In this document: in pieces, positions 19,351 to 23,874 of the stretch | Numbering within the stretch: the stretch's first letter is position 1 | Layout of the letters: every line of letters begins with the position of its first letter | NCBI GenBank assembly: GCA_002269645.1 | Contig: NIVC01002096.1 | Span: forward strand, 20,684 to 84,683 | From: Macrostomum lignano | Lineage: Eukaryota | Reading direction: 5' to 3' | Length of the DNA stretch: 64,000 bases | Position numbers and translations under genes: made by a program | Notes under the pieces: model-generated | Told to the model about the DNA's origin: nothing | Database searches by the model: none | The model's input: the letters and a program-made list of their open reading frames with translations, nothing else

Positions 19351-22300
19351 CTAAGCATCCATGAAATCATCTCCGTACTGCAGGCGCCTGTTGTTATAAA
19401 AGACCGTCAGAATGCTATAGAGAGCCAACAACCCAAGGATTAGGCCTCCGGCTACGCAACTCAGGATAATTAAGGTTGAATCCCTTCGGCAGTTGTAATC
19501 TACAAGGCTTGCCGGAGAAGCTTGTCTGCAGATGTCTGATGCCGGTGTGATAGTTCCGTTGGCTGGAGGAGGGAACAGAATGACACATATTTCAGGGTTA
19601 TTAATAGAGAGATTCTGTAGCATTCCCAATGAGCAGGATTCTCATGAGCCAGATTCTCTCGATTAAGATTCTCAGGGCAGTCGGTGACTCTGACTCTCTC
19701 GGTTAAGATTCTCAGGGCTAAGACTCTCAGGATGAGATTCTCAGGGCCAAGACTCTCTTAGTATGAGACTCTCAGGGCCAAGACTCTCAGGATAAGATTC
19801 TCAGGGCCAAGACTCTCTCGGGATGAGATTCTCAGGGCCAAGACTCTCTCGGGATGAGATTCTCAGGGCCAAGACTCTCTCGGGATGAGATTCTCAGGGC
19901 CAAGACTCTCTCGGGATGAGATTCTCAGGGCCAAGACTCTCTCGGGATGAGATTCTCAGGGCCAAGACTCTCTCGGGATGAGATTCTCAGGGCCAAGACT
20001 CTCTCGGATGAGATTCTCAGGGCCAAGACTCTCTCGGGATGAGATTCTCAGGGCCAAGACTCTCAGGATGAGATTCTCAGGGCCAAGACTCTCTCGGGAT
20101 GAGATTCTCAGGGCCAAGACTCTCTCGGGATGAGATTCTCAGGGCCAAGACTCTCTCGGGATGAGATTCTCAGGGCCAAGACTCTCTCGGGATGAGATTC
20201 TCAGGGCCAAGACTCTCTCGGGATGAGATTCTCAGGGCCAAGACTCTCTCGGGATGAGATTCTCAGGGCCAAGACTCTCTCGGGATGAGATTCTCAGGGC
20301 CAAGACTCTCTCGGGATGAGATTCTCAGGGCCAAGACTCTCTCGGGATGAGATTCTCAGGGCCAAGACTCTCTCGGGATGAGATTCTCAGGGCCAAGACT
20401 CTCTCGGGATGAGATTCTCAGGGCCAAGACTCTCTCGGGATGAGATTCTCAGGGCCAAGACTCTCTTAGTATGAGATTCTCAGGGCCAAGACTCTCTCGG
20501 GATGAGATTCTCAGGGCCAAGACTCTCTTAGTATGAGACTCTCAGGGCCAAGACTCTCTCGGGATGAGATTCTCAGGGCCAAGACTCCCAGGATGAGATT
20601 CTCAGGGCCAAGACTCTCTCGGGATGAGATTCTCAGGGCCAAGACTCCCAGGATGAGATTCTCAGGGCCAAGACTCTCTCGGGATGAGATTCTCAGGGCC
20701 AAGACTCTCAGGATGAGATTCTCAGGGCCAAGACTCTCTCGGGATGAGATTCTCAGGGCCAAGACTCTCAGGATGAGATTCTCAGGGCCAAGACTCTCTT
20801 AGTATGAGATTCGCAGGGCCAAGACTCTCTCAATCAGGGCCAAGACTCTCTCGGGATGAGATTCTTCTTAAGGCCAAGAGTCTCAGGATGAGATTCTCAG
20901 GGCCAAGATTCTCTCGGGATGAGATTCTCAAGAAAAATCTCAAAGGAAAGATTCTAACGTATACGAATTCTCAAGTCACTGGTTAATTGTAATATAAATC
21001 TATCTAATGTCAATTCTCACCATAGAACAGACAGCCAGTGGGAGTAGAACTCTCCGGGCACCACGTGCAGTACATCTTAGACTTGGCTTCGGAAAGAATT
21101 CGGACCTGTGTAGAAAAAGACAAAATATGTGCTTGGCAAATAAAATTGTTTAGATATGCACTTTAATAAATGTTCGAAATTTGATACTATAAGTAGCTCG
21201 TAATTCAACCAGCTATCCCATATCATTAATTTTTTCTGGGAAAATTCTATATTAGCTCGTCTTCGAGGAGATTTTAAACCCAAGGCGATAAGTCTACCAG
21301 CAGCAATCGAGGAGCCAAGCAGACATGCCTCTTGAAGGTAGTCAGTGCCTTCAGAGGGGTGTCAGTGTCCTGAGGGGTGTCAGTGTCTCCTGAGGGGACT
21401 CAGTGTCTTCTGAGGGTTGTCAGTGTCTTCTGAGGGTTGTCAGTGTCTCTATAGGGTTGTCATTGTCTCTATAGGGTTGTCAGTGTCTCTATAGGGTTGT
21501 CAGTGTCTCTATAGGGTTGTCATTGTCTCTATAGGGTTGTCAGTGTCTCTATAGGGTTGTCATTGTCTCTATAGGGTTGTCAGTGTCTCTATAGGGTTGT
21601 CAGTGTCTCTATAGGGTTGTCAGTGTCTCTATAGGGTTGTCAGTGTCTCTATAGGGTTGTCAGTGTCTCTATAGGGTTGTCAGTGTCTCTAAGGGTTATC
21701 AGTGTCTCTATAGGGTTGTCAGTGTCTCTAAGGGTTATCAGTGTCTCTATAGGGTTGTCAGTGTCTCTAAGGGTTATCAGTGTCTTTATAGGGTTGTCAG
21801 TGTCTCTATAGGGTTGTCAGTATGTCAATAAGGAGTTCAGTGTCTTAATAAGGATGTCAGTGTCTCATTAATTATGTCAGTGTCTTAATAAGGATGACAT
21901 TATCTCAATAAGGATGTCAATTTTTCTAGAGGGTTGTCAGTGTCTCTAGAGGATCCCAGTGGACACGCACGCGCTCAGGGACTTTAGGGCTCTTCTTCTT
22001 CATGGGCAACAATTACACGACCAGTCCAGACAAAGAATAAATGCAGACCTACCGAGGGGTAATAACCGACGCTATTAGCTGAGCTTGAGAAGGCGGCAGC
22101 GTCTGCGAAGACGACTCTCACCAAGCCAGTGTGTGGACTGACCAGCTTTCTGAGCTGAAGGGATGTGAAATTGGATGGGTATAGATGTCTATGCTACAGA
22201 TAATAGAATAACAAGATGTCACTCTCAAAAAATACTCTAATCTACTGCATTAAGTAGCAAGCTTAGCGTTTTTTGTCATTACAAGTATGCTGGCAAAATA

Positions 22301-23874
22301 AAAAAAAATTTTGTTTTTCAAGCTGCAATAGTCGGCATTCTAAAGGCAGACCCCAGTACACAATAGCTTCTTCATACTTTTTGAAGCCAATGAATGCAAT
22401 AGCGAGCAAGAGAGACAAGGAGTGGCGCCTTTTGCTTGGGACTGACCTTGGCATCTTTCCTTCCTGCTCTCTCATTGGCTGAGCTAGATTGGGCCTGCCC
22501 CCCCCCCCTAGGCTGAGTTTCGGCTGTCGTGAGTGCGTTGAGTTAAATGCTTGTTGTTAAATCTAAAGCCCTCATCTGCAGCAATAAATTTAAGTGACAA
22601 TGCGCAGAAAAACTACTGAATAAACAGTAGACGCTATGCGTTTTTTAACATTTATTGGCTGAAGCGACACCAGCGAGATGGAAAGCTATCAAAGCTGGTT
22701 GTGAACGATGTCACCACAGCCCTCCTGCAGTTATGATCTTCTATGACCGAATTACCTCGCTCTGTCTAAAGTACTTAGGCTTGAGGTTAGCACCGGGTTT
22801 GCTTCTTATTTGCACCCGAATCTGGTGCCAGCGCGCCTGCGGCGGCGAGAAGTGCACGCTCGCCTGGCCGCTGCAGAATGTCAAGTAGACGCTGGAATTC
22901 CAGGCCTCTGTGGAAATACGAGTGGGGGGTTGAAAAGTCTTCTTACTCCTCGCAAGGATAACTACAAAGCAACTCACGTTTCATGGAGAAAGTTTTGAAG
23001 GCCATTTTTCTCAGAAAAATACACTTTCTAAAAATTGTACGTAGAATAAAAAGATTGACATATAATGCTAATTTTTTAAACAAAAAGCTTTATAAATATC
23101 AACAGAACTTTGGGTCTCCCTCCTATTAAAAGCAATAACTATTTTAATATGAAAAGAGTGAAATTTTCGATCTCCATAGTGTATTTTTCTGTGAAAAGTG
23201 GCCTTCAAAAATTTCTCTATAGATTTTTACTGTTGCGTCCTTCTACTTAAGTTCGATGTTTTGTAATAGATAGATTTGTAGATTTGTAGATTAATAGATA
23301 GATAGATAGATAAGTAGATAGATAGATAGATAGATAGATAGATAGATAGATAGATAGATAGATAGATAGATAGATAGATAGATAGTTAGATAGATAGATA
23401 GATAGATAGATAGATAGATAGATAGATAGATAGATAGATAGATAGATAGATAGATAGATAGATAGATAGATAGATAGATAGATAGATAGATAGATAGATA
23501 GATAGATAGATAGATAGATAGATAGATAGATAGATAGATAGATAGATAGATAGATAGATAGATAGATAGATAGATAGATAGATAGATAGATAGATAGATA
23601 GATAGTTAGATAGATAGATAGATAGATAGATAGATAGATAGATAGATAGATAGATAGATAGATAGATAGATAGATAGATAGATAGATAGATAGATAGATA
23701 GATAGATGCAGATTAATAGATTTGTAATGTAATGTTTGTATGCTTTTTATATAATTAATTGATATTCTCACCAACAGCTGGCATCAGCTCTTTGTCAGTC
23801 GCATGGATACGCACTCCCAGAGTCTGCTGGGACTTCAAGGCTGTGCCGATGAAGATTAAAACGATAACAAACAT
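19351..23874 (-). CDS. uncharacterised 217-aa type I single-pass membrane protein, 5 exons
   Basis: Exons (minus): 23874-23772, 22907-22756, 22154-22053, 21105-21021, 19562-19351. All introns GT-AG with matching phases 1,0,0,1. Product starts with a signal-peptide-like MFVIVLIFIGTALKSQQTLG, has a Cys-rich juxtamembrane part (YCTWC..GC..DIC..YNC), a hydrophobic helix LIILSCVAGGLILGLLALYSILTVFY and a short tail NNRRLQYGDDFMDA. No family recognised. Confidence 0.8.
19635..20935 (+). repeat. 31-bp minisatellite (GAGATTCTCAGGGCCAAGACTCTCTCGGGAT) in intron 4 of the membrane-protein gene
   Basis: Direct reading; about 40 copies. Confidence 0.96.
21338..21950 (+). repeat. 20-bp minisatellite (GTCAGTGTCTCTATAGGGTT) in intron 3 of the membrane-protein gene
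   Basis: Shares the GTCAGTGTCTCTA core with the array at 18302-19290. Confidence 0.93.
23293..23708 (+). repeat. (GATA)n microsatellite
   Basis: Near-pure run in intron 1 of the membrane-protein gene. Confidence 0.99.

Follow-up and report, generated by a model that had tools for sequence, protein, structure and literature searches.

The described proteins that come closest to the subject of this report are human PTTG1IP, the single-domain Ig/FN3 type I proteins and a hypothetical protein of Macrostomum lignano. PTTG1IP (also PBF) is a small type I glycoprotein whose cysteine-rich module lies directly against the transmembrane helix, and it escorts another membrane protein. Single-domain Ig/FN3 type I proteins such as those of the FNDC4/FNDC5-like kind measure about 210 amino acids (aa) and are built, in this order, from a signal peptide, a beta-sandwich of about 90 residues, a linker, a transmembrane helix and a short tail. 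The M. lignano protein, BOX15_Mlig023993, is deposited as the models g1 and g3 (PAA74982.1 and PAA70414.1, 266 aa) and g2 (PAA87183.1, 272 aa); at full length it falls into no Pfam family at E values up to 0.01, and it is absent from searchable literature full texts and from the supplements of PMC5816591 and PMC7336406. Here, these proteins are compared with a locus on the minus strand of M. lignano contig NIVC01002096.1 (assembly GCA_002269645.1), located at 19351–23901 of a stretch of 64,000 nucleotides (nt; contig positions 20,684 to 84,683). This whole stretch is referred to as the window, and all positions follow its numbering. The locus very probably carries an intact five-exon gene for a type I single-pass membrane glycoprotein of 217–226 aa, belonging to a small family found only in Macrostomum and having Mlig023993 as its other branch.

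The gene is a real protein-coding gene, and its five-exon model lies far beyond chance because the paralogue Mlig023993 matches it through all five exons and because its codon usage is that of coding sequence. In a phmmer search of a library of 1.84 billion proteins, PAA70414.1 matched residues 26–169 of the candidate with an E value of 3.2e-26. The ectodomains are 43–45% identical and align through the five exons in the frames originally predicted, with identical codons at 59 of 130 aligned positions. Conserved between the two proteins are the signal peptide, C46, the block CT.C...TP.GCL.Y.NGT..P....C.(R/Q)ASP and the single transmembrane helix. Their gene structures correspond as well, since exons of 103/152/102/85/212 nt in the candidate face exons of 106/176/102/91/326 nt in the paralogue (locus L001), with phases of 1/0/0/1 in both. 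Introns 2, 3 and 4 occupy identical alignment columns and phases (0, 0 and 1), exon 3 measures exactly 102 nt in both genes, and intron 1 keeps its phase with a shift of seven codons in a poorly conserved stretch. The best conserved block is exon 2. Over the 130 aligned codons, nonsynonymous differences (pN 0.35) stay well below synonymous ones (pS 0.83, saturated), a pattern indicative of purifying selection, that is, of constraint at the protein level relative to the paralogue. By homology, exon–intron structure and architecture, the candidate can thus be assigned to the Mlig023993 family.

The two branches also differ. In Mlig023993 the stalk is longer and rich in Ser and Pro, the cytoplasmic tail measures about 40 residues, a cysteine in the sequence FNC stands where the candidate has C172, and both the NSS sequon at position 38 and the YGDDF sequence of the candidate are missing. 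The paralogue loci lie in a neighbourhood different from that of the candidate and are not syntenic with the window. Two of them, L001 (8001–13552) and L002 (5963–10034), encode identical 266-aa proteins and have like neighbours, with a gene of 521/529 aa upstream and Cpn10 downstream on the opposite strand, which is consistent with a recent large-scale duplication in the DV1 line.

The table used to score codon usage was derived from confident genes of the same window (3436 codons). The proposed frame scores positive in every exon (+24.8 bits in total), all other frames of every exon score negative, and none of 2000 shuffles reaches the score of the proposed frame, a margin that is partly due to the mere absence of stop codons in that frame. 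Single open reading frames (ORFs) reveal little of the gene, as had been remarked at the outset: the longest piece at the locus encodes 96 aa, and no ORF of at least 120 aa covers it. Translation of the minus strand at 19300–23950 with the exons joined gives 654 nt and a protein of 217 aa identical to that of the original prediction, whose five exons, canonical sites and matching phases are reproduced exactly. All four introns are bounded by GT and AG, the acceptor reads CAG in four of four cases, and the phases after exons 1 to 4 are 1, 0, 0 and 1. Two donors of the gene read GTGAG; the CAG acceptor and the GTGAG donor are the most enriched motifs at cis-splice sites of M. lignano (PMC8629364).

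The coding part of exon 1 (23772–23901, of which 23874–23772, 103 nt, follow the ATG originally chosen) encodes the signal peptide and ends at the donor G|GTGAGA at 23771. Intron 1 (22908–23771, GT..CAG) holds an (ATAG)n microsatellite at 23294–23707. Exon 2 (22756–22907, 152 nt) encodes EAWNSSVYLTFCSGQASVHFSPPQARWHQIRVQIRS..., with the predicted first beta strands of the ectodomain, C46 and the NSS sequon. It is followed by intron 2 (22155–22755), which consists of unique sequence between the donor GAG|GTAATT at 22755 and a CAG acceptor; a nearer GT at 22793 was considered as donor and discarded, as it breaks the reading frame that the donor at 22755 restores. Exon 3 (22053–22154, 102 nt) encodes LRKLVSPHTGLVRVVFADAAAFSSSANSVGYYPS, and intron 3 (21106–22052, GTAGGT..CAG) holds a 20-bp minisatellite at 21337–21952. 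Exon 4 (21021–21105, 85 nt) encodes VRILSEAKSKMYCTWCPESSTPTGCLFY, comprising the predicted last beta strand and the start of the cysteine-rich stalk with C132, C135 and C144. Intron 4 (19563–21020, GTGAGA..CAG) holds a 31-bp minisatellite at 19692–20930. The coding part of exon 5 (19351–19562, 212 nt) supplies the NGT sequon, C159, C172, the transmembrane helix and a tail of 14 residues, and closes with the stop codon TAG at 19353–19351. The region has about 44% guanine plus cytosine (GC) and is dense in tandem repeats, which account for 2269 bp of a gene span of 4551 bp; a micro- or minisatellite is present in every intron but intron 2.

The 217-aa product originally predicted stands with respect to frame and exons; its start codon, however, probably lies 27 nt further upstream. 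Exon 1 contains three in-frame ATGs, namely the probable start at 23901–23899, a second at 23898–23896 and the one originally chosen at 23874–23872. The first two form an ATGATG at 23901–23896, with a TGA upstream at 23916–23914. A product of 226 aa beginning at 23901 is favoured because the context at position -3 is better there (A, as opposed to T at 23874), because the additional residues MMTNRAEKC would supply a basic n-region for the signal peptide, and because they align with the N-terminus of the paralogue (MVVNKHR...), in which M1 and N4 of the extended sequence have counterparts. The UniProt model A0A1I8G3F0 likewise starts with MMTNRAEKC. On the same strand, cag|AGCC at 23890–23888 could serve as an acceptor for cis or trans splicing and is used in the UniProt model A0A1I8F6A5; with a spliced leader or an exon from further upstream joined at that point, the ATG at 23874 would come first. 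Read from the sequence, a TATA-like TTTAAATA at 24006–24013 on the minus strand, some 105 nt before the ATG at 23901, is a possible core promoter element. At the other end, the 3' untranslated region would occupy 18094–19350 on the minus strand, running through a 20-bp minisatellite (18303–19294) to the first AATAAA at 18099–18094, as no AATAAA was found between the stop codon and the array. Transcript 3' ends containing repeats have been described for the M. lignano genome (PMC5730564).

Public databases hold the gene in pieces. Four partial or frame-broken UniProt models from an older M. lignano assembly correspond to parts of the gene or of copies nearly identical to it. Over exons 1 and 2, A0A1I8G3F0 shows 100% identity, and it begins at the upstream methionine and runs on into intron 2; A0A1I8F6A5 is a chimera of a glomulin-like upstream gene with exons 1 and 2; A0A1I8JMI8 and A0A1I8FR92 represent copies of about 95% identity, read partly in wrong frames. 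Together, these models represent all four junctions. The peptide MPAVEAWN across exons 1 and 2 occurs in A0A1I8F6A5 and A0A1I8G3F0, RQSELRKL across exons 2 and 3 in A0A1I8JMI8, and CLFYANGT across exons 4 and 5 in A0A1I8FR92, which also uses the junction of exons 3 and 4 in the +1 frame. The exact products of 217, 225 and 226 aa were not found in a collection of 15 billion proteins, and searches of sets of 5.8 billion and 1.84 billion proteins, including a profile search, returned no relative from outside M. lignano. The description of the protein as unrecognised thus applies to the intact full-length product, which is new, but is qualified by the partial UniProt models and by an annotated hypothetical paralogue of 43% identity. 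Its proposed lineage specificity is borne out, as all database relatives come from M. lignano, and the family appears restricted to Macrostomum in the databases searched. No confident match to a well-known family emerged from Pfam, from PDB sequence searches or from Foldseek at E ≤ 0.001.

Absence from the GenBank protein set most likely reflects how that set was made. Transcripts overlapping repeat annotations were left out of it (PMC5730564), and the gene was most likely missed through this filter, as tandem repeats take up half of its span and a minisatellite also fills its predicted 3' end. The frame breaks in the UniProt models are most simply explained by errors of the ML2 assembly, which is PacBio-based, less accurate at the base level and poorer in intact ORFs than Mlig_3_7 (PMC5730564).

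Hydropathy and sequence support a small type I single-pass membrane glycoprotein with a predicted signal peptide and one predicted transmembrane helix. All parts listed in the original prediction are present. The N-terminus is hydrophobic (MFVIVLIFIGTAL), with the h-region FVIVLIFIGTAL and a small residue at position -1 as read from the sequence. The ectodomain contains six cysteines (C46, C132, C135, C144, C159 and C172), to which C183 within the membrane segment is added, and two N-glycosylation sequons, NSS at 38 and NGT at 149. A single hydrophobic segment at about residues 177–203 (19476–19396) reaches a Kyte–Doolittle peak of 2.5 and is followed by RR and the short tail FYNNRRLQYGDDFMDA, which ends in YGDDFMDA. 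The YGDDF sequence had been likened to the FxDxF motif that binds AP-2. This comparison finds no support, because position 1 is Y instead of F, because the motif is missing from the tail of the paralogue (AQGDLASSNDSL), and because FxDxF motifs belong to accessory proteins of endocytosis in the cytosol and not to cargo tails.

For the cysteine-rich stalk, the suggested likeness to PSI and PTTG1IP-type modules was followed up against human PTTG1IP (P53801, sequence verified as exact), a target chosen beforehand since it had been named in the original prediction. BLASTP aligned residues 121–192 of the candidate with PTTG1IP residues 46–113 (26% identity, E 2e-5 as a single comparison, with a score inflated by the transmembrane helix) and gave E 0.015 for the paralogue over the cysteine-rich part alone, the candidate and the paralogue not being independent of each other in these comparisons. 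Profile–profile alignment with hhalign yielded a probability of 51% and E 1.5e-4 over 34 columns, and 4 of 5000 and 3 of 5000 composition-preserving shuffles of the ectodomain segments reached the observed scores. The pattern common to both proteins reads CxWC-x(5/8)-CLxY-x11-C-x(9/12)-C and is followed by the helix. Local likenesses extend to CxWC, CLxY(P), (P/T)PAS..C, the final cysteine and a helix containing V(V/A)GG. Of the eight-cysteine PSI pattern C1...C2xxC3...C4xxC5...C6...C7...C8, only equivalents of C4 to C8 are present (C132, C135, C144, C159 and C172); beta-domain sequence precedes the C4 equivalent, C1 to C3 have no counterpart, and the paralogue lacks C8 as well. The resemblance is thus weakly supported for the second half of the module, whereas the definition of a PSI domain does not apply. 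The stalk resembles the membrane-proximal half of the PSI knot and may descend from it. By the available tests, the protein does not belong to the PSI-domain or PTTG1IP families, because Pfam finds no PSI match and the first three PSI cysteines lack counterparts. Compared to PTTG1IP, the candidate adds a beta-rich domain of about 90 residues and corresponds to the PSI module in its second half only; its tail counts about 14 residues where PTTG1IP has about 60 charged ones, and a C-terminal tyrosine sorting signal is lacking. A functional analogy between the two as single-pass accessory or escort proteins is possible.

The remainder of the ectodomain is assigned to a known fold with less assurance. 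Neither the candidate nor its segments matched a Pfam family at E values up to 10, the ig, V-set and fn3 models gave no sequence match to the candidate, and PDB sequence searches with the whole candidate, with the cysteine-rich segment alone and with a profile produced no real match. Several apparent matches were set aside. In the PDB, polyubiquitin structures (E 1e-6) are an artefact of summing nine 2-bit repeats of 'LxDYNxxxxSTL', and a profile match to an antibody V-region (E 0.15) is not significant. Three matches from the protein library, to an Ig protein of 13 domains, to a protein with FN3 and Ig domains and to a giant bacterial adhesin, are inflated by repeats and inconsistently aligned, with the F-G region of C1-set domains placed on the N-terminal strands of the candidate; they were not used as evidence for the fold. 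The AlphaFold model of the paralogue has predicted local distance difference test (pLDDT) values of 63–88 over residues 45–130 with six to seven beta strands, and strands at homologous positions appear in the runs for candidate and paralogue alike. In a Foldseek search of the paralogue model against the PDB, the top matches were all Ig-like or FN3 sandwiches, including Tencon, other FN3 domains (collagen XX fn3), CD45 d1-d3 and V-set nanobodies, with a best E value of 0.011 and target template modelling scores (TM-scores) of 0.4–0.54. The core of the ectodomain is, at low confidence, probably a beta-sandwich of the Ig/FN3 type, an assignment that draws on a three-sequence alignment and on a paralogue model with an overall pLDDT of 56.5. 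Compared with FNDC-type proteins, which resemble it in size and in the predicted order of parts, the candidate is set apart by its cysteine-rich stalk, by having no fn3, ig or V-set match in Pfam and by Foldseek E values of 0.01 or worse.

Taken together, these features allow a mechanism to be proposed. The N-terminal signal peptide would direct the chain into the endoplasmic reticulum, where N149 in the NGT sequon, the sole conserved site, would be the position of N-glycosylation. Outside the membrane, the chain would first fold into an ectodomain of about 90 beta-rich residues, probably a sandwich of the Ig/FN3 type, and then into a stalk of about 45 residues that is locked by disulphides and carries the NGT. 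Three disulphides are conceivable, of which C135-C159 would match C5-C7 of the PSI domain, and a bond from C46 may tie the sandwich to the stalk. One helix would anchor the protein in type I orientation, leaving about 14 residues (NNRRLQYGDDFMDA) to face the cytosol. Because no catalytic or signalling domain is present, the protein would most likely act by binding through its ectodomain, either as an adhesion or recognition molecule or as an accessory subunit escorting some other membrane protein. A bolder version of this proposal, to which we give only a small chance, would see in the Macrostomum family a new ectodomain design, with an Ig/FN3-like sandwich stapled via C46 to a truncated PSI-derived knot. 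The family would then be an offshoot of PTTG1IP-type escort proteins with a lineage-specific accessory or recognition role, possibly in the reproductive tissues, which evolve fast and show an enrichment of Macrostomum-specific genes.

Several points weigh against the overall reading as an intact gene for a membrane glycoprotein of this kind. The gene is known here from genomic DNA and protein models, so that its 5' end, poly(A) site and expression are predictions, and a receptor or adhesion role derives purely from the architecture. On the structural side, the AlphaFold model of the candidate itself (three-row alignment, pLDDT 45.8) is unusable, no Foldseek match of the paralogue model to the PDB reached E ≤ 0.001, and the shallow alignment and modest paralogue model noted above limit the fold assignment. 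As to the stalk, Pfam PSI (PF01437) found no match at E values up to 10 in the whole protein, the ectodomain, the cysteine-rich segment or the paralogue, and PTTG1IP, a pre-chosen target, was not among the matches of the database-wide phmmer and profile searches. Finally, the ML2-based models A0A1I8FR92, A0A1I8F6A5 and A0A1I8JMI8 of near-identical copies contain frame shifts, and some of these copies could be decaying. This last point leads to the alternative that the locus is an intact-looking but silent or decaying recent duplicate of a real family, no longer expressed or needed. The DV1 genome is indeed highly redundant, blocks of 95% identity or more adding up to 180 Mb (PMC5730564), the models of other near-identical copies are frame-shifted, and the full-length product occurs in none of the public protein sets searched. 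However, all five exons are open, the eight splice sites are canonical and pN is well below pS relative to the paralogue, while the broken frames come from the less accurate ML2 assembly with its fewer intact ORFs and the GenBank absence is accounted for by the repeat-overlap filter; we therefore regard a silent copy as improbable. That there is no gene, and that short ORFs lying between minisatellites merely happen to join up, has a negligible probability. The exons are short, none surpasses a 96-aa ORF, and half of the region is tandem repeat, but a paralogue match of E 3e-26 over all exons, conserved intron positions, codon usage and junction peptides in deposited models all favour a gene and already refute this notion.

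Other alternatives accept the gene and place it elsewhere. A glomulin-like gene (PF08568) at 29034–31904 lies upstream of the candidate, likewise on the minus strand, and A0A1I8F6A5 joins the glomulin C-terminus via 28807–28522 and 26241–26101 and the acceptor cag|AGCC at 23890–23888 to exons 1 and 2 of the candidate (23888–29291, minus strand), so that the exons described here might form the 3' part of that gene. The Pfam glomulin match (E 3e-14), however, is essentially complete within the exon of the 29034–29840 ORF, where it covers profile positions 437–615 of 636, and both linking stretches contain stop codons in the copy present in the window, for which reasons the candidate is taken to be a separate gene. 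Moreover, the paralogue stands alone in a different neighbourhood with its own methionine and signal peptide, a signal peptide placed internally, behind a cytosolic protein, would make no biological sense, and with repeats discounted the two genes are still about 3 kb apart, more than the 1 kb that serves as criterion for operons (PMC8629364). A fused gene is thus very improbable. It is also quite unlikely, if somewhat less so, that the protein is a highly diverged orthologue of PTTG1IP, i.e., a PSI-domain escort protein, instead of a member of a lineage-specific family. Both proteins place their cysteine pattern directly before the transmembrane helix, and the BLASTP E value of 2e-5, the hhalign probability of 51% and a shuffle p of about 1e-3 agree with such a relationship. 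Against this stand the missing Pfam PSI match, the three PSI cysteines without equivalent, the eighth cysteine missing in the paralogue, the beta-rich domain of about 90 residues on the N-terminal side that PTTG1IP does not possess, the tail of about 14 residues compared with about 60 charged ones, and the failure of database-wide searches to return PTTG1IP. An intact gene of a Macrostomum-only family accordingly remains the reading we prefer.

The surroundings of the gene are rich in repeats. Across the window, 31 non-overlapping arrays with periods of 4–197 bp occupy 32% of the sequence and 47% of its first 33 kb, and nearly every intron or intergenic stretch has a minisatellite of its own. 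The 20-mer arrays flanking the gene (18303–19294) and within it (21337–21952) have the core GTCAGTGTCTCTA in common, and the core GAGATTCT.A.GG is common to a 15-mer array at 16931–17856 and the 31-mer array at 19692–20930, which suggests that related minisatellite families were seeded locally. Two long-period satellites, one of 197 bp in 7.8 copies (39622–41154) and one of 178 bp in 3 copies (43203–43733), lie in an AT-rich stretch of 25–33% GC between a Brix-domain gene and CDC73.

The glomulin-like neighbour seems to be missing from public protein sets too, as its N-terminal ORF of 281 aa had no match at E ≤ 1e-10 in the set of 5.8 billion proteins. Further along the window, the Brix-domain gene and CDC73 are followed by a dynein heavy chain gene on the plus strand (54212–64000), with DHC_N1 at 55394–56140 and an exon of 1463 aa at 56250–60641. 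Within its span, a (TCTGTCTG)n array at 54610–54941 is open in several frames and gives rise to long spurious repeat ORFs. A GC-rich block (52%) at 38048–39182 contains overlapping ORFs on both strands, one of which includes LGYADELALL, recalling the YxDD box of reverse transcriptases; these ORFs have no Pfam match, and the block may be a degraded retroelement. No Rfam families or tRNAs were found in the window.

For M. lignano, the gene would add one more Macrostomum-specific surface protein and as such is an ordinary kind of gene in this genome. It comes as no surprise, because about 35% of the ORF-bearing genes of the species are lineage-specific (PMC5816591). The stalk with its weak likeness to PSI/PTTG1IP and the putative sandwich would gain interest only in the event that a deeper alignment or a structure bore out a new arrangement of domains, or that RNA interference produced a phenotype. 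The practical value of the finding lies in annotation: an intact gene, conserved within its family, is missing from the protein sets of a model organism for regeneration and reproduction, and the repeat-overlap filter probably hides other genes in this genome as well.

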